A stretch of 64,000 nucleotides of DNA from Utricularia gibba (lineage: Eukaryota > Plantae > Magnoliophyta), in NCBI GenBank assembly GCA_002189035.1, contig CM007992.1, forward strand, positions 3,348,001-3,412,000. Direction: 5' to 3'. Below the pieces are notes generated by a model, which had not been told where the DNA came from, ran no database searches, and saw only the letters and a program-made list of their open reading frames with translations. Both the position numbers and the translations under genes were made by a program. Positions 19,042 through 61,798 of this stretch are shown here, piece after piece. Each line of letters starts with the position of its first letter. Position 1 is the first letter of the stretch.

Positions 19042-21502
19042 CTACTCGGTGTCTCTGAGGCTTTCAGGTGCCACCCACAGTTTCTTCTTAAGGATGAGCA
19101 CAGCTTCATCGCCTCCATCTTGGCCGGCGGCAGCTTCTGCGGCTGAATCAGATGTCGCGACTGCTTCCCAGTGCAATGCCGACAGATATTTCTTCACAAA
19201 GTCGATGACGCCGGGGCGATCCCTGACGATTACGAACCCGGATGGTCTGAGGATGCGGTCGATCTCCAGGAGGAGGTCCTCCCGGCTGCAGCCCTTCTTT
19301 TCGATGTCTGAGAAGATGGTCCAGGCGTGGAGCATGTCGTATGTTCTTGGGTACGTGGAGAAAGCTTCGCACCTGGGAATGGCGGAGGGGGTTTACCATA
19401 CGGGGTTCCGGCTGTGGAAAAGGGTACACAGGAAGAAGGACGTACCAGTTATGAATGCTGCCGATCAAGCCCCGGTCGTAAACAATCTTGAGAGTGTTGG
19501 GTCCATCTTCGGGGACTACGTTCATCACCCATACATTTTTGTCCTTCAGAGCTGCAGCAAAGGATCCTAGATTTGCCTTCATGTCCATCACGTTCCTCAC
19601 TGTATCTGGGCCGATTTTCGTGCCGAGGAGATTCCAGTAACTATCAACCCTCTGCCTCCAAAGTTCCTGGAAAGGAAGAGGACATGAGCAGTTTTTGGTT
19701 TAGAGGGAATGCATGTGAAGAATAGAGAATGTCATGGGTGGGGTGGGGTGCTGTGTTCAATACCATGTCCTTGTCAAAGATTTCGCCTGAGTAGCCGAGA
19801 TCAGCGAGACGAGGAGGAGGGGAAGTTAGACGGTCAGGCCAAGGCGCCAGCCCACTTCCTCCGGTTTTGTGATCATCTGATGATGGGAGAGGAAATATCA
19901 GATGAGATATAATTCACAATTCCTATCATATAATCTTTAGAGTTGCCATAAAAAGTTTGCAGACCAGGTGCAAGGTTGAAACTCAGAAATGGATGCAAGA
20001 TAGTTTTGATAGAGAAGATGCTTACGCTCAGAGTAAGGGGTGATGCATGTCTCCATTGCTACATTCCACACAGCGTCAGGGTCATCTTCAGATCGACAAA
20101 GAGGAGGCTGGGTGCCGGGCGCTCTCTCTAAATAGCAGTCATTAGTCAAAGGCTTTTGCCAAATCACTGTCTGGTTCTTTTTGGCTGCAATCCTCCAACA
20201 CATACGCTCCACAAGTTCACTCATCTGCTTCCAGATCCGAAGATCTTCTTCATCCTGGGCATAAGCTTCAGGTGAAGAGTAGGCAAAATAACCTCCAGGT
20301 CTGAGCAGCCTATCCAATTCAAGGAGGAGAATCCCATCCCTTTGCAACCAATCAATTCTACAGCGGGAACAGTGTGCAAGCTCAAATGATCGGCTTGGAT
20401 AGGGAAGTCGCTTAGTCCCAAGAACACCAAGGTATGCGGGAATTCCCCTTTCCAGAGCAAACTGGATCTGATTTTGGTGCACATCATTCGGAGCTAATGA
20501 CATGGCAATTATATTTGATGAGAGAAGGTAACCACCAAAACTTGCAACCCCACACCCCACATCAAAAACTGTACGTAAATTTCCTTCATTGTTCAAGATA
20601 TTGTCTGAAAAGTTGAGCATCTACAAATGAAAAAATGATCAAATTAGAAAGGAGGGTTCTATAAATATCTGCTAATGGTGTAAAAAGGAACTTACATTTG
20701 CGATGTGAGCAATGTACTTGTCTGCTCCATAGTGAAAGTGGGTGCCACCTCCAGGAAAATTAATCTTATCTCCCTTGACAACCATCCAATTTTGGTCAGA
20801 TTTCTCCTGTGCAAGGTGCGTGTGCGGGATGTTTGCTTTCCAAACTTCATCTCTACTTGCTGGCCACTTGATTGGAACCTACAGTGGCACCAAACCATGA
20901 CAACGCAAAAATGGAAAAAATTCTGAAAAAAAAATGCACAATGCAGATATGTAAAACACCTTATATCCAGGTGGCGGAGGAATTAAGCAATTGAACCGCC
21001 TCTCTGGCAGTGGGCAGTGCCTTTCATAGTGCTCCATCAAAGATAAATCCAACTTTAATCGCATCTGAGAATGAATATTTCTGTCCAGACAGGGGATCAA
21101 CTCCGAATGCCGATCATCACAAACCTTGGTGAAAAGAAAAATAACTTCTCAACCATATTAAAAACAACAAAGGGATCATTCATAAACAGTTACTACATTC
21201 AAATGGGCCTTAAGGACAGGAGAACATACTGGAAAGCTCTTTGGTGTGATACTGTTATCCAACTCATCTGATTCTTGCTTGTTTGAAGGATCTTCTTGCC
21301 TATGGCCAATGTCAGAATCTTCATCCCCACCCACGTAAGATGAGCCTAGCCTTCTCAAAGATCGACTTCCATATTCTAAAGCAGACTCCCCAGAGCTACT
21401 GGAGCCATAGTAGAAATACAGAAAAACAAGAAATACGGCCACGAGGCCCACTGAGAGAAAGAGGCGCTTCTTTTGCGCACCATCTGACCTTGCCCTCGTC
21501 AT
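19042..21502 (-). CDS. Probable SAM-dependent methyltransferase, PMT (DUF248 / Methyltransf_29) family, PMT1/3/8-like type II membrane protein
   Basis: N-terminal TM anchor; IPCLDR..HYERHCP; VFDVGCGVASFGGYL; SLAPNDVHQNQIQFALERG; RNVMDMKANLGSFAAAL; YPRTYDLLHAW-like motif; EIDRILRPSG. Confidence 0.93.
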
Positions 21503-25276: not shown

Positions 25277-25668
25277 TGATAGCAGTTTATATCGATGTGT
25301 GAGGGTTGTAGAACAGATATTTTATTTAATGTTATGCAAGAGTACACATATTTATAGTTCTTTAGCAACGGTCGCCTACTTCTAGGGATTAGCCGTTGCT
25401 CACTACGACTTCCAACAATATTGACTTCAGCACGTTGGGCCATATCATCATGTTGGGCCATTTTCTTGAAGTGGATGAGTAGCAAGATCTTTGTTGGTGG
25501 CCCATCTTCTGATCTTGCTGTCCAGTATAATCAGTCCGAGTTGCTGACAGACCTTCTTCTTCTTCCTCCCGTTATCTCTCAACACATTCGTATTTTCCTG
25601 TTCTGGGTCCTCCACATTTCTCACAGTTTGCTGCTGGTTTATCTCATATTCGTCCTCACTCGACATCA
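25277..25668 (-). repeat. 3' LTR (392 bp)
   Basis: Same sequence as 30236-30627 by eye; TGAT..ATCA termini; TATA-like CTATAAATA on the minus strand at 25349-25357. Confidence 0.95.
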
Positions 25669-28600
25669 TTCCTCCTTGAGGAAGAACATGAGATGAGGCA
25701 GCAGTAATCAAGGGATTTCTGCGCAGCCCTAATAGCTCACGGATTTGAGAGAAATGACTTGGAAAGAGGGCTTTGGTGAGAATGTCTGCGGCTTGTCTTT
25801 CTGATGGTAAATACTCCAATTTTATGCTTCCTTCTTTGATGTATTCCCTAAGAACATGGTATTTGATTTTGATATGCTTCGTCTTCCCAAACATGACCGG
25901 ATTTTGAGCAATACTTATGGCTGATTTGCTGTCAATTTTCAGAATGAGTGGCTTGTTAATCTTGATCTGTAAATCTTCACATAATTTCAGGAGCCATTGA
26001 GCGTGATTTGCAGCACAAGCTCCAGCCATGTATTCTGCTTCGGCTGAGGATTGAGCTACTAAGGTCTGTTTTCTGCTGTTCCAAGCAAATGCAGCAGAGC
26101 CCAGAGTAAACAAATAACCAGTGGTGGATTTAAGATCAGATTCGTCACCTGCGAAATCAGAGTCTACGAACCCTTGAAGAGATAGGTCAGTATGCCTTTT
26201 GAAGTATAAACCCATAGTTTTTGTAGCATTCAGATATTTGAATATTTGTTTAGCTATTCTAAGGTGTAAAGCAAGAGGGTGATGCATAAACCTGGATAGA
26301 AACGTTACAGCGAATGTAATGTCCGGTCGAGTTGAGGTGAGGTATAGTAGGGCACCAACAGTCTTCTGATATTCTCGTATGTTCACTGAATTTTCTTGAG
26401 GATCTTGTGGCCCTGAATCGGCAGAATTTAATTCTTTCAGATAGTTGTTTGCCTTGTTCTTCAGGTATGGAGTGAAAGGCGTAGTTGCTTCTTTTGCATT
26501 GTCCATCCCAAATTTTTTTAGTAAGTCTTCAGTGTATTTTTGCTGGCTGAGAAATATAAAATTGGGATCTTGTATTATCTCTAGTCCAAGAATATATCTT
26601 GCTGGCCCTAGATCAGTCAATTCGAACCGTTGTTTGAGCCTTGATTTTTGATCTGCTATCAATGTCTCGTTATTTCCTGTTAGTAAGATGTCATCAACGT
26701 ATAAAGATATGATGACCTTTCCAGTTTGATTGTTGAGGGTGTATAGAGTAGGGTCGTTCTTGCTTCTGATATAACCCATTTGACCAAAGTATGAATCTAT
26801 GGTTGAATACCATTCCTTGGGCGCTTGTTTAAGCCCGTAGAGAGCCTTTTGGAGTTTTAACACCTTATTTGAGCCATCCTTTAGTGTAAAACCGGGAGGA
26901 TTTTCAACATATATGTCTTCTTTCAAGTCTCCATTCAGAAACGCATTCTTTATGTCTAAATGGTGCAGGATCCAACCTTGACTGGCGGCTAATGCGATAA
27001 TCAATTTTATTGTATCCAGACGAGCTACCGGTGCGAAAGTCTCCCAGTAGTCTATACCTTCCTTTTGAAGATATCCTTTTGCAACCAGCCTAGACTTTAA
27101 CTTATTTACTGAGCCGTCTGGATTTAGCTTTGTGCGATAAATCCATTTTAATCCCAACGGTTTAATATTGAGAGGTTTATCCACCGCTGTCCACACTTGA
27201 TGCTCTGCTATGGCCTGTAACTCATTATCCATTGAGGTTTTCCATGCAGGATCATTGAGAGCTTCGAAGGGAGAGGTAGGTTCACAAATCATAAGCGATC
27301 TGTCATAGACTTCAGTAAGAGGACAGTAACCTCTAGCAGGCTCTTCATCTATGAGATGATCGGCTGACTGCAGCATAAAGTGATGTGTATAGGAATTGTA
27401 GTTGTTTGCTGAATCTTCTGAGATATTTTCTGTGTTATCATGTCTTTCAGATATAATTTGCTCAGAGTTTTGGAAGTGAGATGTATTTTCCTCCTGTTCT
27501 TGTAATGAAGAGAATTGATATTCTGATTCTCTGCTTTCTCCATGTTGAGGCTGTTGCGACGAAGTAGGATATGGCATATGATCATTACTTTGCATGTCTT
27601 GATTCCTTTCTGAGTGATGTCTGAAATAATTGTTGTCCTCTGTTTCTGCACCAACAAGATTGGAATTATTCGTAATAGTGGTATTAGTTTCAGGAAGTTC
27701 ATTGACAAGATTCTCTTCGTGCATTTCAGTAAGATTTTCAGATGCATTGATAGGAAATAGGAGTTGCATGTCTCTGGAATATTCAGCTTCGTTTTCAGGA
27801 GTAGAAGAGATATTATGCCAGTCATAGGTCAGACTTTCTTCAACCACAACATCAGCACATCTTTGAACTTCTATACATTGTTTGGATGGAATAAATATTC
27901 TGTAAATTTGAGAGGAGTCCGAATATCCCATAAAGACCCCCATTTGAGCATGATTCTCTAACTTTCTGCGTTTTTCTTTAGATATATGGACATAGCAGAG
28001 GGATCCGAAGATTTTCAGATTCTGTAGATCTGGGACTTTTCCATACCACAGTTCATGTGGAGTTTTTCCTTCAGGTATTCCTTTGGTGGGAAGTCGATTT
28101 AATAGGAATACCGCTGTGTTAACAGCTTCTCCCCAAAAGCGCAATGGTAAGTTGTGTTCCAATAACAAGCAACGAGCCATATTCATAATCGTTTGATTTT
28201 TCCTTTCACAAACACCATTTTGTTGAGGGGTATATGGAACGGTAAACCGATGAACTATACCACTTGCATTGCAGATGTCTCGGAGTTCGGATGATTTGTA
28301 TTCCCCGCCATTGTCTGAATGCAAAGTAAGTATTCTACAATTGCTTTGTAATTCTGCCATCATCTTGAACTGCTTGAAGTATTTAGTCACTTCAGACTTT
28401 TGCTTAAGAAAATATACCCACATATGCTTGGTGTAGTCATCAATAAATAGGACATAGAATTTCTTTCCACCAGGTGTCTCAACATGCATAGGTCCGCATA
28501 CGTCAGAGACTACTAGCTGTAGTTTAGAGTCGGATACTTCAGTACGATTCTTGAATGGCTTCTTGTGCATTTTCCCAAATAGACAGGTGCTGCACGGGAA

Positions 28601-30103
28601 ATTCCAGTCCTTTAATTGAGGTACGCCATGTATAACTCCTTGGGTTTGCGCTGTTCTGAGTTGGCTTGCATGATAGTGACCTAATCTTTTGTGCCATAGG
28701 AAAGAGGTATTTACAGCTGCAAGACAGAAATTACTATTAGTTGTCATGCAGTTAACTGGAAAGAGGCGATTTACCATGGGCACTTTTAGTACAATATTGT
28801 GAGCATAATCCTTCAACAAGCACATATTGTTCTCTATATTCAACTCATATCCACATTCTGCTAGTTGTCCTGCACTCAGTAAGTTGTGAGAAGCCTTTGG
28901 TACATAGAATACATTAGTAATCTTGATGAGTTTTTGTTCAGTTTCCAGACAGATTGATCCAACACCTTCAACTGCAATGAGCGTTCCATCAGCAATGGTG
29001 AGAGTTTTTCCTGATATTGGGGTATATGTTGTGAATATAGACTTGTTGTTGGTCAAGTGATTACTGCAGGCGCAATCAATGAACCAGATTGTGTTGTGTC
29101 GTAGATCAGTGAAATCAGAGAGAGTAGTCTTGCTGCACAAGATATAAACTGAAGACTTCACTTTCATATTTGAATCATCAGGAGATACATGAATTGATTT
29201 GTTTTTTGAATGTTCAGAAGATGCAGCAACAATATAAGTAGAGGCATATGATTTCTTGGTGGGACACACACGCTCCACATGGCCTTTGGTTGAACAGATT
29301 GCGCAATGAGCCTCAGGATGCCAAAAACAGTTCGTTGGAATGTGGTTTTTCTGTGCGCAATATGGGCAAGGAGGATGTGGCCCCTTTTTCTCTTTCTTGA
29401 CAGGTAGGAAACTTGGTGCAGAATATTGTTGTGTCCCATTTTCTCCTTTAGGACCTGCTATAGTAAGTGATGCTTTGAAGGCAGCTTCTAATAGATTTTC
29501 TTCATTGCGAGATTTACGTCTGCTGTCCACATTTTTGAAGTGTTGGAGCAGTTGCTGCAGACTCAGAGTTTCTAGAAATCCGGTTGCTTCCAAGGATTCA
29601 ACGACAGCATCATAATCTGCCGGAGCACTATGAATGATCCTGGCCTTAAGCTTGCGCTCTTCACGGGAGTCAACTTCTTCTCCAAGGCGCTTTAGTTTTT
29701 CCAGGTTTTTGAGAAGTTGTTCTGCATTGGTGGCTACCTCGCCATCTCTAATTTTGAAGTTGTAAACTTCATTCCATAGTTTCTGTATCTCCCTGTGCTT
29801 GTCTTCCTTTGTTTCTTCAAAGGTTTTCTCGAGCATAAGCCACGCCTCTCTTGGAGACCTTCGAGTTATACACCTGTAAGCATCTCCAACCACTGCTGTG
29901 GCTAGCACAGCTGCAGCCTGAATTTCTTTGTCTCTATAAGCTTTTTCAGCTGCAGTTTTTTCTTCAGGTGTTCCTTCAAAAACTGGATCAGTGGCTATTA
30001 TTTTCCAGAGCCCATGAAGTTGGAGATATATCTCCATTTTTGGCGCCCAAATATCGTATTCCTTTCCGTCAAAAATGGGAGGTAATATGTTTGTTACAGA
30101 CAT
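25448..30103 (-). CDS. Copia Gag-Pol polyprotein (first ATG at 30103; the ORF is open further upstream to 30202)
   Basis: PIFDGKEYDIWAPKM gag start; two CCHC knuckles (CPYCAQKNHIPTNC, CAICSTKGHVERVC); protease WFIDCACSNH; LWHKRLGH; integrase DVCGP/SDNGGEY/QQNGVCERKN; RT LQKALYGLKQAP and YVDD; RNase H FVDSDFAGD..SSAEAEY..QAADILTKAL. Confidence 0.95.
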   Translation of the reverse strand: MSVTNILPPIFDGKEYDIWAPKMEIYLQLHGLWKIIATDPVFEGTPEEKTAAEKAYRDKEIQAAAVLATAVVGDAYRCITRRSPREAWLMLEKTFEETKEDKHREIQKLWNEVYNFKIRDGEVATNAEQLLKNLEKLKRLGEEVDSREERKLKARIIHSAPADYDAVVESLEATGFLETLSLQQLLQHFKNVDSRRKSRNEENLLEAAFKASLTIAGPKGENGTQQYSAPSFLPVKKEKKGPHPPCPYCAQKNHIPTNCFWHPEAHCAICSTKGHVERVCPTKKSYASTYIVAASSEHSKNKSIHVSPDDSNMKVKSSVYILCSKTTLSDFTDLRHNTIWFIDCACSNHLTNNKSIFTTYTPISGKTLTIADGTLIAVEGVGSICLETEQKLIKITNVFYVPKASHNLLSAGQLAECGYELNIENNMCLLKDYAHNIVLKVPMVNRLFPVNCMTTNSNFCLAAVNTSFLWHKRLGHYHASQLRTAQTQGVIHGVPQLKDWNFPCSTCLFGKMHKKPFKNRTEVSDSKLQLVVSDVCGPMHVETPGGKKFYVLFIDDYTKHMWVYFLKQKSEVTKYFKQFKMMAELQSNCRILTLHSDNGGEYKSSELRDICNASGIVHRFTVPYTPQQNGVCERKNQTIMNMARCLLLEHNLPLRFWGEAVNTAVFLLNRLPTKGIPEGKTPHELWYGKVPDLQNLKIFGSLCYVHISKEKRRKLENHAQMGVFMGYSDSSQIYRIFIPSKQCIEVQRCADVVVEESLTYDWHNISSTPENEAEYSRDMQLLFPINASENLTEMHEENLVNELPETNTTITNNSNLVGAETEDNNYFRHHSERNQDMQSNDHMPYPTSSQQPQHGESRESEYQFSSLQEQEENTSHFQNSEQIISERHDNTENISEDSANNYNSYTHHFMLQSADHLIDEEPARGYCPLTEVYDRSLMICEPTSPFEALNDPAWKTSMDNELQAIAEHQVWTAVDKPLNIKPLGLKWIYRTKLNPDGSVNKLKSRLVAKGYLQKEGIDYWETFAPVARLDTIKLIIALAASQGWILHHLDIKNAFLNGDLKEDIYVENPPGFTLKDGSNKVLKLQKALYGLKQAPKEWYSTIDSYFGQMGYIRSKNDPTLYTLNNQTGKVIISLYVDDILLTGNNETLIADQKSRLKQRFELTDLGPARYILGLEIIQDPNFIFLSQQKYTEDLLKKFGMDNAKEATTPFTPYLKNKANNYLKELNSADSGPQDPQENSVNIREYQKTVGALLYLTSTRPDITFAVTFLSRFMHHPLALHLRIAKQIFKYLNATKTMGLYFKRHTDLSLQGFVDSDFAGDESDLKSTTGYLFTLGSAAFAWNSRKQTLVAQSSAEAEYMAGACAANHAQWLLKLCEDLQIKINKPLILKIDSKSAISIAQNPVMFGKTKHIKIKYHVLREYIKEGSIKLEYLPSERQAADILTKALFPSHFSQIRELLGLRRNPLITAASSHVLPQGGMMSSEDEYEINQQQTVRNVEDPEQENTNVLRDNGRKKKKVCQQLGLIILDSKIRRWATNKDLATHPLQENGPT
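25669..25680 (-). other. Polypurine tract (CTCAAGGAGGAA) abutting the 3' LTR
   Basis: Purine-rich run immediately 5' of the 3' LTR on the element strand. Confidence 0.7.
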
Positions 30104-30217
30104 GATGACACTCTTTTGAGAACCTGCGATAGAATATAGAGTAAGGTAAGAAGCCTTTAGATGTAGTGTTTGAGTGGCAAACCGTGTTTGGAAGGATAGC
30201 AATGTTGAGCTGCTTGT

Positions 30218-41187: not shown

Positions 41188-41871
41188 TCAGGCGTCGGTG
41201 GGGAGCTCCAGCCGGCAACAGGGGCAGCTATGGCCGACGCTGAGCCACTTTGTGATGCATTCTTTGTGGAAGAAATGTCGGCACGGCATCTCGAAGCCCT
41301 CAGCGTCATCAGCATACTCCTCCAGGCAGATGGGGCAGGAATCCATGATCGAAGACGCCGCCGTCGTGCTCTTCAGCGCCGCCGCAATGGCCGACTCCTC
41401 CGCCCTCACCGTCACCACGGCATCGTCGTCCATGGACTGCAGCACGGTCTCCGTCTCGGAATCCACGTTGAGATCAACGCCGATGCGGTAGTTGAGCCAG
41501 AAGCGGTTACAGTTGGGGTGCAAGTTCCGTATTGCGCCGGAGCATGAGTAGCAGATATGACAAATTAGGAATTCCTGGACGTACAGGGGTACATGGGCAT
41601 CCCACGCCTCCCATTCTTCTATGCGGCGCCTGATGGCGGGTCCGATGGCCGCGGTTGTTGGGTCGCTGCGCTTCACGATGATGGATAACTCCAGCGGCGC
41701 CAGACGGACGGAACTGAGGATGGTGCCCATGCTCCGCACGGAGGATCGGATGATGATGCCGAGGCTGACCTCCACGTCATCAGAGCTCTCTCCGGTACGG
41801 CGGAAGGCGAAGCTTTCTTGCGCGGAGAAGGAGACCGAGTCTTCGCCGTTGGAGAAGAGGATCTCGTTCAT
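41188..41871 (-). CDS. Intronless C-terminal RING-H2 E3 ubiquitin ligase-like protein, copy 1 (227 aa)
   Basis: CPICLEEYADDAEGFEMPCRHFFHKECITKWLSVGHSCPCCRLELP (C3H2C3 spacing). Confidence 0.88.
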   Translation of the reverse strand: MNEILFSNGEDSVSFSAQESFAFRRTGESSDDVEVSLGIIIRSSVRSMGTILSSVRLAPLELSIIVKRSDPTTAAIGPAIRRRIEEWEAWDAHVPLYVQEFLICHICYSCSGAIRNLHPNCNRFWLNYRIGVDLNVDSETETVLQSMDDDAVVTVRAEESAIAAALKSTTAASSIMDSCPICLEEYADDAEGFEMPCRHFFHKECITKWLSVGHSCPCCRLELPTDA

Positions 41872-46281: not shown

Positions 46282-46964
46282 TCAGGTGTCGGTGGGGAGC
46301 TCCAGGCGGCAACAGGGGCAGCTATGGCCAACGCTGAGCCACTTTGTGATGCATTCTTTGTGGAAGAAATGTCGGCACGGCATCTCGAAGCCCTCGGCGT
46401 CATCAGCATACTCCTCCAAGCAGATGGGGCAGGAATCCATGATCGAAGACGCCGCCGTCGTGCTCTTCAGCGCCGCCGCAATGGCCGACTCCTCCGCCCT
46501 CACCATCACCACGGCATCGTCGTCCATGGACTGCAGCACGGTCTCCGTCTCGAAATCCACGTTGAGATCAATGCCGATGCAGTAGTTGAGACGGACGCGG
46601 TTACAGTTGGGGCGCACGCTGCCTATTGCGCCGGAACATGAGTACCGGATCTGAGAGATTAGGAATTCCCGGACGGGCAGGGGATATGGACATCCCACGC
46701 CTCCCATTCTTCTAGGCGGCGCCTGATGACGGGTCCGATGACCGCGGTTGTTGGGTCGCTGCGCTTCACGGTGAAGGATAACTCCAGCGGCGCCGGATGG
46801 ATGTTACTGTGGATGGTGCCCATTTGCCACAGCGAGGATCGGATGAGGAATCCGAGCTTGACCACGACGTGATCGGAGCTCTCTCCGCTACGGCTGAAGG
46901 CGAAGCTTTGTTGCGTGGAGAAGGTGAGCGAGTCTTCGCCGTTGGACAAGAGGATCTCGTTCAT
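46282..46964 (-). CDS. RING-H2 protein copy 2, with an apparent 1-bp deletion in the G run at 46680-46683
   Basis: Two ORF-track frames together match copy 1; adding one base to the homopolymer restores HIPLPVREFL. Confidence 0.8.
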
Positions 46965-47833
46965 GCTTCTTCTCTTCGTCTGTTCACAGTATGCACAACG
47001 CGGGAGACTTGAGGGCTTTTATAACAAGAAGAAGAAGAAGATATGGAAACAAATCAAGTATTATGGAAACAATTAGTTATAAGATTGTGATTATACCTTT
47101 TTAATCTAATTATTTTATTTTATTCAGTTATGTAATATTTTATATAGTATAAATGTTATTCAAATTTTATATTCAAAATTATGTATATCTAGTCTTTTCA
47201 AGAATAATAAATAAAAATATTTGTTGATAAAAAAATATATCTTACATTATAGTAATGGAGATTAAAAATGTTTGATATAAAAAATAGTGGGAATTGAATG
47301 CACAATTTTCGTTTATCCTATTCTATATTATTAATTTTTTGAAATAATTATGTTTAATTTTTAATTATTCTATAATAAAATAAGACATTCAGATTCTATT
47401 ATTAACTTTATAAATTATTGAATTTTTTTCAAAGATAACATAACAGAATAATTATTAAAATTATATTTCTTATTTTTTATTTATTCTAAAAATATATTTA
47501 TATGATAATATAATTTAATATTTCAAAATGTATATTGTATATTTTATTAAACTTTATTATAATATGTTATACGAAAAATCAGTTTTAGAATTTCAAGTTG
47601 ATTTTATTCATATAGTTTTAGCTAATATAATGATACGTAGTTGGAAATTCTAAAATAATGTGGCTGGAGCGAAAGGGAAGCCGAGCCGAGTCAAACGGCT
47701 CAGTTTGACTGACTTGCCTGTTTAATCCACGTGGCTTCAATTTGTCCAATCATAAAATTCTCTCTCAAGCAGATCACATGCACCAAACATCAAAATCTCA
47801 AGAACAAGAAAGTTGATTTGGAATGATCTGGAA

Positions 47834-48151
47834 ATGGCGGAGGAGAGGAATACGAAGGCATCGGCGGGGCGTGAGCCGAGCAGGTTGCAGCGGAGAGCTC
47901 CAGCGTCGATTCAGATCGCTCCGGCTAAGGAATGGAATGTTGCGATCCCCCTTTTGACGCCGTTGATCCCGATTATGGGGGACATAGTCAACGGAGGAAA
48001 AGAAGTCGCGGTTACCGAGACGAATAAGCCGCCGCCGCCCTCTTCGTCTCTGGCGATCAACAAGTGGCAGCACCCGGCTGCGCCGTTCGGGTTTGATCCG
48101 CCTGAGATGCCGTTTGTGCCTTTTTTTTGTACCGGGAACCTCGGCCGATAA
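47834..48151 (+). CDS. Small Pro/Ser-rich MAPK-substrate-like protein (At3g23170 PRP / At4g14450 / At1g04330-like family)
   Basis: SRLQRRAPASIQI, WNVAIPLLTPL and KWQHPAAPF..PFVP motifs, recognised from memory. Confidence 0.75.
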   Translation: MAEERNTKASAGREPSRLQRRAPASIQIAPAKEWNVAIPLLTPLIPIMGDIVNGGKEVAVTETNKPPPPSSSLAINKWQHPAAPFGFDPPEMPFVPFFCTGNLGR

Positions 48152-48373
48152 GTATTCTTTTTCTTTTCTAATGTTCATATGTTTCAAAACTTTTAAAATC
48201 AACGAAGTCGCTAGCCTTTCTGGATCCCTCTTGCTTATACTCACATTGCTTGCCACTTGCATCTCCGAGGAGGTGGACGTTGAGGTTGAGGGTTGGAATC
48301 ATACCCTGTGGCTGGCGTGATTTGAGAAAAAACAAGCAATAACCTGCAATGATGCTGATTAAAGAATGCATGT

Positions 48374-50359
48374 TTATCGCAGTGCCATTTCTTTTTGAAT
48401 AGCCGATTCCGGCTGCACTTGTAACCGCAGTTCAAGAGCCATGGTGTGGACTAAGCCCTCTGGATTGGAGGTAACCCACAGGTCACCATGCATTAGCTGT
48501 TCATTGCAATAAAATGCAATGGTTATTGCATAGAAAGTGCATGTAGAGGCAGCACTACTTGTGAAAAAAGAATTTGATAGTAGAAGCTGAACCTGAACAA
48601 GCTTTCTGTTAGCACCAAACCTCATGCTTTTCCTGAAATCCAACCGACTGAACGATGGTACATCTTTTTGTCGATGAGGACCAGAGTGGCAGATAGCCAT
48701 GTCGAACCGGACGAATGTGAAAGCATTGGATGGACTTTTTCCTTCATGGCAACATTCTTGTATGTTCTTTTTGCAACTGTGGCATGCTGGATAGACATGT
48801 AGAATATGGTAACTCCCTATTTTGCTTGCATTTATGAAGTTTCCAACGTTGTGCAGAATGACTTGAAACACTCTCTTTTCATCTCCGATTGCAGGATTTT
48901 GCAAGGAGTTGTCGACTCTGATTTCGAATTCACACCCTCTGCAAGCAGAGATGCACTTGAAGATGCAGGCTGCTTCTTTAATGGTGGAATGTAGCTGAAA
49001 AGGCTTGATATCCAATGATAATTTTCCACTTTTTTTTGCTGAAGTAGCATCCATTGCATCTCTTATCGAAGTTGAAATAGCATTACAAGCTTTAAACATC
49101 GCATCAACAACCAGCCGTTGACTGTTTGTGAACTTGAAATCCTGCAATGAGGATGAAAGACCAAGAACAGAGTCCACTGATTTTTTTAAACACTTAGTCA
49201 GTGCCATTTGACATGCCTTCTTTACTTGAGTAGCCTTCACTGCATCCTCTTTTTCTTCCTGCAGGGCGCTGTTTTGTGCAATGAGCTTTTCCTGTATGTT
49301 TTTCAGCTCTTCTAAGATCCAGGCATGGGAAAGAGCTACCGCCACTTGATCTGCAATTGCCTTCACAATGTCGAGCTCCTCTTCGCTCCATGATCGGCTC
49401 CGCCCATTTTTATGCACCAAAGTGATGATGGCGGTGCAATCAGGAACCATCTCATGAGTCCCACCATTGAAATCAGACACCCTTAACAGTGGCACTCCTA
49501 CAGCAGCTACACACCCCACCTCACCTCTCCCTCTCCCTCTGCTTCTATCAACACCAAGAGGTGATTCTGGATTCAGAATCTTGACTCCATTGATCCCCTC
49601 GATCGCTCTAACATCCGGATCATCGATAGGGATGCGCAACTTATGCCATATTGACTTGCCTCCTCCACTCAACTCATGAATCAGCTCCATTTCAGTTTTT
49701 GCTGCATTGGGCATCCACACTGCGCAGGTCTCCACTTCCAGGGCCTTGGGTAGCTCAACCAGTGTGGTCTGCAATATAGTATGCCGATCAAGGGACTTGC
49801 GAATCTCTCTTGTCAAAATTCTGAATTGCAACGAAGCTTCTGTCTGCTTCTTTATAACTGTGATCTCTCTCTGAAGCTCCCTGGTTTTCTTTCTCAGCAT
49901 AAACTCCCTGACGGTGACCTTAAGCAGCATGGGGATGAAGGACAGAAGGGATACAACCGTGGCGGAGGAAACCAGAGCAGTGAGGCACTTGAAAATGGTG
50001 ACAGCAACCATGAGCTGAAAAGAGTGTGATCGATAGCTCCAGAAGCTGAGGAAATTGTTCATTCCACATAAGACAATGAATGCAATGAACTGCACCAGCG
50101 CCAACTTAAACTTCATAGCAGAACAGCTAACAAAGAATATCAGCTCAATGAGAATCGCAAAGTAAGCTACAGCAATCAGCAAATCACTGACTCTTCTGAC
50201 CTCCATGATAATGTCAATGAACAAGAATCGCTCCTCATCGCAGTTACAGTGAGAACCATCCTCATCAGATGCCATTCCTTCACCAAATAAAGACAAAAGC
50301 AACACCACCCAAGATGCCAGTGCTTTCCCCATTGGTCTCACATCCAACACTTCATCCAA
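48374..50359 (-). CDS. ETR2: Subfamily II ethylene receptor (ETR2/ERS2-like): signal peptide, 3 TM helices, GAF, degenerate His-kinase, no receiver; probable in-frame intron ~48500-48595
   Basis: Hydrophobic N-terminal extension + CNCD; SDLLIAVAYF; FIVLCG; LTREIRKSLDRHTILQTTLVEL; VKAIADQVAVALSHA; FQLHSTIKEAACI; GDEKRVFQVILHNVGN; KLVQ|LMHGDLWV. Confidence 0.88.
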   Translation of the reverse strand: MDEVLDVRPMGKALASWVVLLLSLFGEGMASDEDGSHCNCDEERFLFIDIIMEVRRVSDLLIAVAYFAILIELIFFVSCSAMKFKLALVQFIAFIVLCGMNNFLSFWSYRSHSFQLMVAVTIFKCLTALVSSATVVSLLSFIPMLLKVTVREFMLRKKTRELQREITVIKKQTEASLQFRILTREIRKSLDRHTILQTTLVELPKALEVETCAVWMPNAAKTEMELIHELSGGGKSIWHKLRIPIDDPDVRAIEGINGVKILNPESPLGVDRSRGRGRGEVGCVAAVGVPLLRVSDFNGGTHEMVPDCTAIITLVHKNGRSRSWSEEELDIVKAIADQVAVALSHAWILEELKNIQEKLIAQNSALQEEKEDAVKATQVKKACQMALTKCLKKSVDSVLGLSSSLQDFKFTNSQRLVVDAMFKACNAISTSIRDAMDATSAKKSGKLSLDIKPFQLHSTIKEAACIFKCISACRGCEFEIRVDNSLQNPAIGDEKRVFQVILHNVGNFINASKIGSYHILHVYPACHSCKKNIQECCHEGKSPSNAFTFVRFDMAICHSGPHRQKDVPSFSRLDFRKSMRFGANRKLVQVQLLLSNSFFTSSAASTCTFYAITIAFYCNEQLMHGDLWVTSNPEGLVHTMALELRLQVQPESAIQKEMALR

Positions 50360-51774
50360 TCACCACTCACTACTGATGACAAGAAGTAGTACAGAGTGTG
50401 CCTGAGCTCATGGATACAAACCCTGTGCATCTCAACATGCCAATCCCATAATACATTTCTCAACAAGGAGTCACCCCTCTTGCTCCTATAGTGCTATTAC
50501 GAGATTGAAAGGCAAATTGCAAGAACCAAAAACAACATTTCTGGACAAAAGAACTGTGCCTAAGCCAAAGTAGACCGCACCTGGTTCCTGCCGTTTCCAA
50601 TGAGGAAAAAGCTTCAACCTTGTTTCTTGTTTTAGGTGAGAAGAAACGTTCAAAACCAGGTAGCAATGAGTGACAGCAGCTGACAAAAAATTAATTCATA
50701 CTGAAGAGGGAGCCCCCACTGCGCTCTCGTGAAGAGAACTTGGACGCTTTATCTTTGTCAAGATATAATAAAAAATCTCTTTTTTCAAATATCTATTGGA
50801 TATTTATTTCTAGTCACCTGTATGTTCGTGGCCACACTTATGAGATATAATGTAATTACGTCATTTTAATAAAATATGACGTCAGTACTATTTTAGGTTA
50901 AATTATTATATTATTATTTTGATAGTGGGTTGTGATCTCATCTTAATTGAGATAATATTTATATCCAGGAACATAACAAGATGGGCTTTTCGTATTGGGC
51001 TTTCTACATGGACCCAATCCACTATTTTAGAGATCCAACCCTAAAAGCCCATCCTGAGCGATGGATTATGAAGGTCGAAAATCAACATAATATATCATGA
51101 TTTAAAAAACAAATAACTCATTTTTAATTATCTGTATAATATATAATTAAAAAATTGGAAAAACCATTATTAAAATTCATATTATTGAACATATTCATTA
51201 TTTTATTCATAATATAATAACATTTAATTTAAATCAAATTTATAAAATAATATATCATTAGATTTTTGGGTTGTTTGCTAAGATGGTATAAAAGTTCTAT
51301 ATCTAAATTTACACATATATCGTTGTTTGATTCATTAATAAACGTAAACTAACATTATATGATTATATCAATCATATATACAAATGAAAGAAGAAGTTAG
51401 TTATATGTATATCATTCACACATTCATATTTCTATTTTCGAATATTAATTCAATGTTATAAATATAGTAAATATGTCATTTATTAGAAAATTTATTTATT
51501 GATTTTTTTAAAAAAATAAACATTTTTTTATTATTTAAAAAATAGTCGGTTTTTTCCAAATATTGCCATAAACACATATAGCTATGCAAGATGCGCCGAC
51601 ATACATATGTTCCAATAATTACACATGCCATGTATGGCCATGCTCATCGGGAATAATCACTCCACATGCCATGCCCCATGCACATGGCCATGTTCCCTTC
51701 CATCTCGACACACCCTTTTTTTTATAAATTTATTTTTCAAAAAATAAAATTCTTGGAGAAAATGAAACGCCAAA

Positions 51775-58980: not shown

Positions 58981-60297
58981 CAATATTTTTCTTCAACCAT
59001 TGTTTTTATTTAGAAAATATTTTATTAGAATATATTTTGATAATTTTTGTATATAAATTTTTCTTATAAATATATAATAATTATTTATTTATTTACCAAC
59101 TACCAAACACAACAAGCTTTATCAAATATTTCATTGACATGCAAATAAATTAAATATTCCAACGAACTATTTAATTAGTTAAATGGTTTTTTTTTTCAAA
59201 AAATAATCTTCTAACCAACTTTTCTTATTCCCGCGCATGAAGGTAACTAACTTTATTAATTAATGAATTAAATATTAATAAATAAAATAAAATATTAATT
59301 GCTTGAATATAAAAACGGCTGGAATATTCATGAGAGTGGCTGTCAGCCCTCTACTAAACCCACTCTATTAGTTAATTAATTAATTAAGTTATTGGTTAAT
59401 TAATCCAGAATTAATTCGCTGACCTACGTCCCATCCTGTCGACCGCTTCATGGGCGGTCCAACCCGGTTCAGAACCTGCGAGCCTGGAGAAGGCCTGCGG
59501 TTTATAAGTACAAGAGCTGGTGGACGAAAATGGGAAGGGAAAGCGATACGCAGCGAGATCTTGGTCGCGGGAGTTGTTTGAAGGGAAATCGGGACACGTT
59601 GCAGGTTGACGGAGGAGGAGGTGACGAGGAGCAAAAAAGTTCATTCATTTGCATCCATTCTATATTTGTCGCGTTCTAACTGGGTCCATTTTCATGCACT
59701 TCCGTCCGCACAATTCAGGATATATTGCGATCCCCTCGCCCCCAACTCTTGTAAGGAAGGAGAAAGTGTGTGATCATCGCACCCCGGAAGTACCGAGATT
59801 TGTGCTCGACACTGAGCTCTGCAGTTTTCCAGGTGCAAAATCTTGGGTTTGCTGTCTTGCCGCGATTCATCCTGTCCCCTGAGTGGGTTTTTTGGATTTG
59901 ACTTGTGGGGGTTTTCATGGTAGCGTTTCATTTTCCTTCAACTCTATGTTGCGTTCGGGGTGATTGAACTTGTGTTGGCTGTGACTAGTAGAAAGGTGTC
60001 CTGTTTAGATGTACACCGATTGAAGGTTTATCCCTCTAAGATAAGTGGATGCACCAATAGGGTAGCCTACGTGTTCTCCGATCTCCACAAATCCGAGTCC
60101 TATCAGTCGTTTGTAGACATTGGAGTGGACAAGGCATCAGCTTGTGAAGAAAAGAGTCATTAGGAGTGGCTGGTTTTCACTTTATATGTTGTTTTGATTA
60201 TCTAGAACTATTCCTTCATCTTCCAGCTTTTATATGCATACAATTGTGTCCGGTTTGGAGTTACTCACAGTTCTGCACCTTATTGTCTCCCAGAAAC

Positions 60298-61798
60298 ATG
60301 GGAAGCAATGGAGGAACTAACTATGGATCATACACATATGAAGATCTCGAGAGGGAGCCCTACTGGCCTTCAGAAAAGCTCCGGATTTCCATAACAGGGG
60401 CTGGTGGATTCATTGCTTCTCACATCGCAAGGCGACTGAAGAGTGAAGGCCATTACATCATCGCATCCGACTGGAAGAAGAACGAGCATATGACAGAGGA
60501 CATGTTTTGCCATGAATTCCATCTTGTGGATCTGAGGGTGATGGATAATTGTCTGAAAGTTACCCTGGGAGCCGACCATGTCTTCAACCTTGCGGCCGAC
60601 ATGGGAGGCATGGGCTTCATCCAGTCCAACCACTCCGTCATCATGTACAACAATACCATGATCAGCTTCAACATGATAGAGGCTGCAAGGATCAATGGAG
60701 TGAAGAGGTATTTCTGTCATCTTACTGTGCCGCTTGCCTTCCTGAATTCATCATAAGATGGAGAGCTGAAATCAGTTTATTTGGCTTTAGGTTCTTTTAT
60801 GCTTCTAGTGCCTGTATTTACCCTGAGTTTAAGCAGCTGGATACAAATGTGAGCTTGAAAGAGTCTGATGCCTGGCCTGCTGAGGTTCTGCTTTTTTTCT
60901 AAGAACTTAACCCCCTGAATTCCCTCCTTCCCTGGCTTATCTTCATTCTCCCCCATGGCGTAGCCTCAAGATGCATATGGGCTGGAGAAACTGGCAAGTG
61001 AGGAAATCTGCAAACACTACAACAAGGACTTCGGAATTGAGTGCAGGATTGGCAGGTTTCATAACATCTATGGCCCCTTCGGTACATGGAAAGGTGCTCT
61101 ATCCACTTCGTCCCATTTCCTTACTCACAAAGCCATCGAATAATACTCGGATGTGTGTTCCAGGTGGGCGGGAGAAGGCCCCAGCTGCGTTCTGCAGGAA
61201 GGCCATTACATCTGCTGATAAGTTTGAAATGTGGGGAGATGGCCTGCAAACACGATCCTTTACCTTCATAGACGAATGCGTTGAAGGAGTCTTGAGGTAC
61301 GAGCCCTTCCTGTCAGATCCCACCCCCATCTTCACCAGTCTTCTGAACCGCCAATTCTTTCCAGATTAACGAGATCGGACTTCCGAGAGCCGGTGAACAT
61401 CGGAAGCGACGAAATGGTGAGCATGAACGAAATGGCTGAAATCGTTCTGGGGTTTGAGAACAAGCATGTCACGATTCAGCACATCCCCGGACCGGAGGGC
61501 GTGCGTGGTCGGAACTCCGACAACACCCTCATCAAGGAAAAGCTCGGGTGGGCTCCGTCTATGAAGCTCAAGGTACAGACTTTGCATTCAAAAGGCTACC
61601 CGTTACCTGCATTACAGCTCATGGGCGGCGCGTGTTGGTGCAGGATGGGCTGAGGATCACCTACTTTTGGATCAAGGAGCAGATAGAGAAGGAGAAAGCG
61701 AAGGGCCTGGACTTGTCCGCGTACGCCTCCTCCAAAGTCGTGGGTACGCAAGCCCGGTCCAACTCGGCTCTCTGCGCGCCGCCGATGGCAAGGAATGA
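60298..61798 (+). CDS. GME: GDP-D-mannose 3',5'-epimerase (ascorbate/cell-wall pathway), with an apparent missing C at 61753-61755
   Basis: MGSNGGTNYG..SEKLRISITGAGGFIASHIARRLK; ADMGGMGFIQSNHS; YGLEKLASEE; REKAPAAFCRK; WGDGLQTRSFTFIDECVEGVLR; PEGVRGRNSDN. One extra C restores QAPVQLGSLRAADGKE*. Confidence 0.96.

Follow-up and report, generated by a model that had tools for sequence, protein, structure and literature searches.

A transcribed ETR2/EIN4-type receptor gene of Utricularia gibba with Never-ripe-type and copper-ligand substitutions and no receiver domain

INTRODUCTION

Can a plant carry, as the reference and transcribed allele of an ethylene receptor gene, a receptor that would be blind to ethylene, and is such a gene still constrained or already decaying? 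Ethylene receptors are negative regulators and, to our knowledge, every known binding-dead receptor is a mutant or engineered allele, of a kind used to delay ripening or senescence. The question is raised by a receptor gene on the minus strand of a 64,000-nucleotide stretch of the bladderwort Utricularia gibba (assembly GCA_002189035.1, contig CM007992.1, positions 3,348,001 to 3,412,000 of the forward strand), which is referred to below as the window and within which all coordinates are given. A first reading of the window from its letters alone (the sequence-only reading) had found in this gene substitutions known from ethylene-insensitive mutants, and had proposed a non-binding brake on ethylene responses or, failing that, a sensor of something else or a decaying copy. 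Here, we report that the gene is transcribed and correctly spliced, that its frame is intact, and that its domains have been constrained to very different degrees. The interpretation that we favour, at about an even chance, is that the gene encodes a translated, ethylene-blind, ERS-like receptor subunit.

The ethylene-binding pocket is altered at several invariant positions

The ethylene-binding domain (EBD) of the encoded protein, composed of three transmembrane helices (TM1–TM3), spans amino acids 45–140 (49913-50200, minus strand). It is matched by Pfam ETR1_N (PF25487) with E=2.9e-20 over 95 of the 97 profile positions, and both hydropathy and an AlphaFold2 model, with helices at residues 37-70, 76-98 and 104 onward, agree with this assignment.

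In the EBD, several residues of the ethylene- and copper-binding pocket are replaced. Specifically, in ETR1 numbering and reading the minus strand, a CTC codon at 50150-50152 places Leu at the Pro36 site (P36L), and the adjoining codons AAC and AAT at 50054-50059 place Asn-Asn at the Thr68-His69 site, giving T68N (50057-50059) and H69N (50054-50056), the latter removing the copper-binding His. Furthermore, GTT at 49955-49957 places Val at the Ala102 site (A102V), which is the etr1-2 position, AAG at 50111-50113 gives P50K, and TTG at 50102-50104 gives W53L. Residues D25 (GAT), Y32 (TAC), I62 (ATT), C65 (TGT, 50066-50068) and K91 (AAG) are kept. The sequence-only reading had listed P36L, H69N and A102V, the altered P50 and W53, and the retained D25, Y32, I62 and C65, and all of these are borne out codon by codon; T68N had escaped it.

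These positions hardly vary in the family. In the 120 best homologues, the motifs SIP[IV]EL, PFK[WL] and CG[ML]TH are present wherever the motif scan located the TM region. The binding domain could be aligned for 192 family proteins, of which 185 have Pro36, 185 have His69 and 179 have Ala102. The pocket changes are far outside family variation.

The functional meaning of two of these changes is well documented. The Cu(I)/ethylene site is built from C65 and H69 of TM2 together with D25 (PMC10266040). P36L is the lesion of tomato Nr and Arabidopsis etr2-1, so the identity that the sequence-only reading had drawn with these alleles stands, and ETR1 carrying P36L retains less than 5% of wild-type binding, according to the statement in PMC3212723 that cites Wang 2006. 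From the combination of P36L with the loss of the copper-binding His, we strongly infer that the encoded protein would no longer bind ethylene.

The gene is transcribed and spliced into an intact 620-codon reading frame

The coding sequence runs from an ATG at 50332 to a stop at 48374-48376 and comprises 620 codons with the frame intact. Exon 1 (48593-50332, 580 codons) extends from this ATG to a conserved ...KLVQ exon end, and exon 2 (48374-48496) contributes 40 codons and the stop, both as defined by alignment. The N-terminus MGKALAS... at ATG 50332 resembles the MLKALAS... of relatives in an alignment with ETR2/EIN4-like receptors. The exons are separated by a 96-nt GT-AG intron (48497-48592, minus strand), whose joint from 48496 to 48593 (CT..AC on the plus strand) is present in RNA of three runs (X1, X2 and X5) from two studies. 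The exon 1 end KLVQ|GT is common to seven homologue loci, and subfamily II has a single coding intron at this same site in the CA (ATPase-like) domain.

The sequence-only reading had taken the gene to be open for 661 codons, and this figure does not hold. The 661-codon open reading frame (ORF) on the minus strand spans 48374-50359 and arises because the 96-nt intron is in frame and free of stops and because the listing begins at a TTG upstream of ATG 50332. It contains a 32-codon insert that a protein alignment finds in no relative, and this insert is the intron that is spliced out in RNA. An intron-retaining contig is also seen in X1; retention would add 32 residues to the CA-like domain without truncation.

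The RNA data, which are unstranded assembler contigs from X1, X2 and X5, cover 47759-50698 and place the transcribed span of the receptor gene at 48374-50670 (minus strand), with the 5' end at ~50660-50700 and the 3' end at or beyond the stop. No contigs are present on the flanks at 46800-47670 or 50800-51500, and the signal therefore represents RNA rather than contaminating DNA. Overall, the gene is transcribed in runs of at least two studies.

The same data bear on whether the substitutions are real. Indel artefacts have been attributed to the assembly, which could suggest a sequencing or assembly error or a mis-joined gene model. The changes are substitutions, however, and the X1 and X2 contigs show zero differences from the window over 48894-50659/50670. 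Furthermore, for the stretch 50030-50180, all sampled 31-mers (share 1.00) occur in DNA runs from both 2013 and 2019 and in RNA runs from 2020. The sequence-only reading had itself argued that indel artefacts do not explain the substitutions, and the agreement of transcripts and reads from several studies confirms both this argument and the codons; we consider the chance of an artefact negligible. In genotype X5, which is divergent and labelled as the same species, 11 of 12 sampled 31-mers of this stretch are found (0.92), and the presence of Leu36 and Asn69 there is judged from this share.

The encoded protein has an ERS2-like domain architecture

The gene encodes a subfamily-II (ETR2/EIN4-type) ethylene receptor. 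Consistent with this assignment, the protein has the extra signal-peptide-like segment that subfamily II carries ahead of the CNC motif: the N-terminus, MGKALASWVVLLLSLFG...HCNC, aligns with homologues, and hydropathy agrees. This hydrophobic segment and the CNC cysteine pair (amino acids 29 and 31) occupy 50240-50332 (minus strand), and the two cysteines are the equivalents of Cys4 and Cys6, which form the dimer disulfides.

The EBD is followed by a linker and GAF domain (amino acids 141-345, 49298-49912), which is the best-conserved part of the protein and is matched by Pfam GAF (PF01590) with E=1.4e-10. Next come a degenerate dimerisation (DHp) region (amino acids 346-420, 49073-49297), assigned by a sequence match to the ERS1 DHp in the PDB (E=5e-8), and the CA-like domain (amino acids 421-580, 48593-49072, running into exon 2), assigned by a match to the ETR1 CA domain in the PDB (E=6e-7). 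Pfam HisKA, which is present in the homologues, is not detected in the window protein. The AlphaFold2 model predicts the three TM helices, the GAF sheet, and DHp and CA elements; its mean predicted local distance difference test score is 62.6, so that it serves for the secondary-structure layout only and is too weak for pocket geometry.

The conservation of invariant residues follows these domain boundaries. Invariant columns, defined as those in which 98% or more of 103 full-length homologues have the same residue, number 162, and the window protein keeps 123 of them, comprising 42/53 in the EBD, 54/67 in GAF, 9/20 in DHp and 14/18 in CA.

Homology to receptors runs to ...LRLQVQPES, the end of the CA-like domain, and is followed by nine unrelated residues and the stop. 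Neither tblastx with the whole Genlisea and Paulownia loci nor tblastn with four receiver domains found a receiver domain in the 64-kb window, which rules out a hidden receiver exon. A stop just past the CA domain and the lack of receiver sequence together define an ERS2-like architecture.

The gene is the positional copy of a core-Lamiales receptor

In a tree of 45 proteins, the window gene falls inside a clade of core-Lamiales ETR2-like receptors ('clade a', a 16-row set with support 98). Within it, the gene is sister to a receptor of Genlisea aurea, with SH-like approximate likelihood-ratio support of 93 in the protein tree and 100 in the codon tree, and a tree without this pairing is 40 log-likelihood units worse. 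The window protein and the Genlisea receptor also have in common a derived LSFW motif after TM2. The terminal branch of the window gene is 1.33 substitutions per site, compared with a median of 0.12 in the same tree. No closer relative was found above 53-56% identity in a word-index search, or above 47% over the full length in a HMMER search of 1.84 billion representatives, and the protein databases have no entry for the window's own proteins.

The genomic setting indicates how this copy arose. A convergent neighbour on the plus strand (47834-48151), encoding a small At4g14450-like protein, abuts the receptor gene. Its homologues share contigs with ETR2-like genes, a few gene numbers apart, in Paulownia (both paralogues), Penstemon, Cinchona and Phtheirospermum. 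The window receptor is therefore the positional copy of the ancestral receptor and not a dispersed duplicate, a possibility that had been hinted at by the flanks, since the window has no gene in common with the 10 kb on either side of the receptor genes of Genlisea and Paulownia. A processed retrocopy is ruled out because the ancestral intron is still present and spliced. In summary, the gene is the species' positional copy of the 'clade a' ETR2/EIN4-type receptor of core Lamiales, and a deletion likely took the receiver-coding end together with the intervening genes.

The best database matches of the neighbour are 45-52% identical to it. In genotype X5, it carries a 21-nt in-frame insertion at 47964.

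Purifying selection is concentrated on the linker and GAF domain

Selection was analysed with the coding DNA of seven homologues in a 564-codon ungapped alignment, using a Goldman-Yang-type branch model implemented in our own script (F3x4, one kappa, sites without rate variation). On the window branch, the ratio of nonsynonymous to synonymous substitution rates (omega, dN/dS) is 0.37 (dN 0.25, dS 0.68), compared with 0.104 for the background. This value differs from the background (likelihood-ratio test (LRT) 44.8, p=2e-11) and from 1 (LRT 23.4, p=1.3e-6), and the estimate ranges over 0.27-0.37 under three topologies. The gene is transcribed and its dN/dS is significantly below 1 along the branch, two of the points on which the sequence-only reading had wished a functional receptor to be judged. 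The sister branch leading to Genlisea has an omega of 0.125 and a dS of 0.84; the window dS is similar and its dN threefold higher, so the acceleration is particular to this copy and not a property of the lineage's receptor generally.

The branch-wide value conceals large differences between domains. In the linker and GAF domain, omega is 0.21 on the window branch against 0.089 in the background, and is below 1 with p=6e-7. In the EBD, it is 0.44 against 0.035, which is above background (p=2e-8) and only marginally below 1 (p=0.049). The values for DHp (0.62 against 0.061) and for the N-terminus (0.89 against 0.148) are not different from 1, and for the CA-like domain (0.41 against 0.19) neither test is significant. 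On this branch, the linker and GAF domain have therefore been under strong purifying selection, and the pocket and DHp under scarcely any. With omega below 1 in every domain, there is no support for the idea that positive selection produced the long branch.

The persistence of the reading frame provides a second measure of constraint. There are no premature stops or frameshifts, and all indels relative to the homologues are in frame. In simulations, in which indels were not counted, the chance that 620 codons remain free of stops is 0.05 at a neutral change (K) of 0.05, 0.003 at K=0.1 and ~4e-5 at K=0.2. A history of constraint followed by neutrality would need ~0.2 neutral substitutions per site to yield an omega of 0.37. 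At a probability of ~4e-5 for an open frame under that much neutral change, decay is rejected for the whole of the long branch.

The pattern of constraint in the EBD also bears on whether the pocket, instead of being lost, has been re-tuned, such that it binds copper or another metal with a changed ethylene affinity, or a different small ligand. The retention of D25, Y32, I62, C65 and K91, and of most invariant EBD columns, together with an EBD omega marginally below 1, could be read in this way. Furthermore, a receptor with the natural variant D25N works despite an affinity lowered 100-fold (PMC10266040, PMC11971883), so pocket variants can be functional. Against this stand the near-abolition of binding that P36L causes on its own, the direct coordination of copper by H69 in current models (PMC10266040), the lack of any sign of positive selection, and the fact that no candidate ligand is known. 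On balance, a re-tuned sensor appears improbable.

A predicted ethylene-blind subunit is weighed against a decaying copy

The favoured interpretation, an ethylene-blind receptor subunit, can be set out as a series of predicted steps. Loss of the receiver domain by deletion would have left an ERS2-like layout, and P36L, T68N and H69N, together with P50K, W53L and A102V, would have dismantled the ethylene and copper pocket. The protein is predicted to be made, to be inserted in the endoplasmic reticulum membrane, and to be able to dimerise through the kept CNC cysteines. It could then enter receptor clusters through its GAF domain while being unable to bind ethylene, and as a hormone-blind subunit it may alter the output of receptor complexes independently of ethylene. 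Ethylene receptors dimerise through disulfides at Cys4 and Cys6, and the GAF domain may mediate the formation of heteromers (PMC4479046). Binding-dead etr1-1, even when cut to residues 1-349, represses responses constitutively and needs subfamily-I receptors to do so (PMC2952764). By analogy with etr1-1(1-349), the most likely effect of the window receptor would be to hold partner receptors in their signalling, response-repressing state. A blind subunit of the predicted kind could act as a brake on its partners, be inert ballast, or have an ethylene-independent role.

Several results weigh against this interpretation. The receiver domain is lost, and 39 of the 162 invariant residues are changed, compared with 6 in Genlisea and 2 in Striga, a pattern suggestive of relaxation over much of the protein. 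A strong direct output to CTR1 is made less likely by the degenerate DHp and the missing receiver, and the N-terminal half alone of a mutant maize subfamily-II receptor, Zmetr2b(1-386), the counterpart of etr1-1(1-349), confers no insensitivity (PMC2952764). The rates in DHp and the N-terminus are indistinguishable from neutral. Because neither protein database holds a closer relative, the long branch cannot be broken, and at 0.7-0.8 dS is partly saturated. In addition, contig ends in genotype X5 point to a 74-nt GT-AG cryptic intron (50127-50200, minus strand), seen in this genotype only, which excises TM1 and shifts the frame; these ends join 50126/50128 to 50201/50203, and loose contig ends at 50128 and 50201 map to 50203-50215 and 50112-50126.

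Variation within the species points the same way. Genotype X5 differs from the window by ~2.5%, and the 29 coding differences listed, on which the polymorphism count is based, comprise 20 nonsynonymous and 9 synonymous changes. The corresponding omega of ~0.7-0.8 agrees with neutral evolution and exceeds the family background clearly and the branch value of 0.37 marginally. Six of the differences are common to X6 and X5, and all six are nonsynonymous. Present-day constraint on the gene looks weak. Together with the missing receiver, the poorly kept DHp and the inactive maize fragment, this near-neutral variation weakens the case for the constitutive brake that the sequence-only reading had proposed.

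These same observations can be accommodated by a decaying copy that became redundant after receiver loss and is drifting towards a pseudogene, with the binding-site changes as part of the decay and full relaxation as a recent event. The near-neutral variation within the species, the alteration of about a quarter of the family-invariant residues, the absence of the receiver, the aberrant splice in X5, and dN/dS values not clearly below 1 in DHp, the N-terminus and (as a borderline case) the EBD all fit such a history. If constraint was fully lost only recently (K<=0.025), the ORF would still be open with a probability of ~0.2. However, the whole-gene omega of 0.37 is significantly below 1, and uniform decay should not spare one domain as the GAF domain has been spared. 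The neutral time needed to account for the branch dN would almost certainly have brought stops and frameshifts, of which there are none, correct splicing of the intron persists, and expression is steady in three or more studies. Thus, the decaying copy that the sequence-only reading had kept as an alternative fails as an account of the whole branch and survives as an account of the recent past, where we regard it as a serious possibility, although one short of probable.

The outcome matters in either case. If the receptor is ethylene-blind and at work, its presence as the normal, expressed allele of a wild species would amount to a natural experiment in which hormone sensitivity is tuned by receptor composition and not by ligand levels, and, were it to desensitise the plant to ethylene, such a receptor could suit the submerged life of a bladderwort, where ethylene builds up. 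The freeing of the pocket and DHp while GAF is held bears on which parts of a receptor serve ethylene-independent functions and partner signalling. If slow decay is the true history, the gene would document the order in which a receptor paralogue is dismantled: the receiver first, then the pocket and DHp, then GAF.

An antisense transcript overlaps the receptor gene

A second spliced intron lies over the CA-like domain of the receptor gene on the opposite strand. This 86-nt GT-AG intron (48809-48894, plus strand) is supported by a joint in X1 and X2 RNA with the GT and AG ends checked, and it indicates a spliced natural antisense transcript over the receptor 3' half. In X1 and X2, the depth of the spliced form is similar to that of the unspliced form. 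The antisense transcript may reflect a long 3' extension of its convergent neighbour, the At4g14450-like gene, or come from beyond it.

These features raise the further question of whether the locus matters at the RNA level alone, as one half of a convergent sense/antisense pair with its At4g14450-like neighbour, the protein being irrelevant. The plus-strand intron and the continuity of contigs through both genes would fit this proposal. The contigs are unstranded, though, which leaves the extent of overlap uncertain, and a role in RNA would leave codon-level purifying selection and the maintained frame unexplained. We therefore consider an RNA-level role very improbable.

Other features of the window

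Elsewhere in the window, a minus-strand ORF at 41188-41871 encodes a 227-amino-acid RING-H2 protein. A search of 5.8 billion proteins returned three weak matches, to the RING finger only, and the gene is orphan-like or very fast-evolving. An intact 1,584-amino-acid copia-type polyprotein ORF is located at 25448-30202 (minus strand). Putative exons of a GDP-mannose 3,5-epimerase-like gene (60166-60756, plus strand) and of a pectin methyltransferase-like gene (19937-20620, minus strand) were recognised by eye from ORF translations.

Comparison with known ethylene receptors

The substitution at the TM1 proline connects the window receptor with a classical group of mutants. Tomato Never-ripe (SlETR3/NR P36L), Arabidopsis etr2-1 (P66L) and tomato Sletr1-1 (P51L) have the same Pro-to-Leu change at this position, and etr2-1 belongs, like the window receptor, to subfamily II. 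The lesion causes dominant ethylene insensitivity and nearly abolishes binding (PMC3212723). These alleles are single spontaneous or induced mutations in otherwise normal full-length receptors, whereas all runs with the window gene (X5 by 31-mer share) have the change as the reference state, and it is joined by T68N/H69N, by ~37 further substitutions at invariant sites, by the degenerate DHp and by the absence of a receiver.

The TM2 copper-ligand residue is likewise lost in melon Cm-ETR1/H69A and Cm-ERS1/H70A and in etr1-1 (C65Y). The melon H69A and H70A transgenes appear in a table of PMC4591681 among the constructs employed to obtain ethylene-resistant ornamentals, and the title of the H69A study cited there speaks of reduced ethylene sensitivity in Nemesia. 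Unlike the window receptor, in which a natural His-to-Asn change is combined with a much-altered C-terminal half, these are laboratory alleles with intact output domains. Relative to the dominant-insensitive class as a whole, the output half of the window receptor has a well-kept GAF domain, a degenerate DHp and no receiver.

In its layout, the window receptor resembles Arabidopsis ERS2, which also has a signal peptide, three TM helices, a GAF domain, a degenerate kinase and no receiver. ERS2 binds ethylene and keeps the pocket residues, in contrast to the window receptor. The truncated etr1-1(1-349) is both receiver-less and binding-dead, and it represses through subfamily-I partners (PMC2952764). 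The Genlisea aurea receptor (P0041), the closest relative in the trees, has a short intron at the same site as the window gene. It is nevertheless conventional, retaining 156 of the 162 invariant residues and the receiver domain that the window receptor lacks.

Among database representatives, broken pockets are found in other natural receptors as well. The subfamily-II 'ethylene receptor 4-like' proteins of Triticeae have a TM2 reading AAFAVLGGAVH (I62A, C65G, T68V), which is conserved in Triticum, Aegilops and Hordeum (P0137, P0394-P0402); here the Cys is lost instead of His and Pro, and the proteins are full length (~725 amino acids) and of an origin unrelated to that of the window receptor. 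They show that receptor paralogues with a broken binding site recur in nature. Scattered further cases are a quinoa ERS1-like protein with T68R/H69Y (P0231), a carrot ERS1-like paralogue with P36T (P0404), a Brazil nut (Bertholletia) paralogue with P36H (P0158), and a Spirogloea protein without C65 and H69 (P0156). A literature search found no paper on natural binding-dead receptors, on bladderwort ethylene receptors or on the Triticeae ETR4-like pocket, and a recent wheat family survey makes no comment on that pocket. In view of these variants, the window receptor is not unique in kind.

Taken one by one, the substitutions in the window receptor are those of textbook mutant alleles. What is unusual, and described in no paper that we found, is their combination in a reference allele that is transcribed and constrained in a domain-specific manner. 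A bolder, two-part proposal would hold that the gene is under selection as an ethylene-blind 'pseudo-receptor', docked through its GAF domain and setting a hormone-independent floor of repression that desensitises the plant, and that it forms, with the Triticeae ETR4-like proteins and the scattered P36 and H69 variants, a recurrent and unrecognised class of natural binding-dead receptors. Taken together, we rate these two claims as doubtful. Moderately interesting on its own, the window gene gains in interest as one among several hints of an overlooked class of natural receptors that may be binding-dead.

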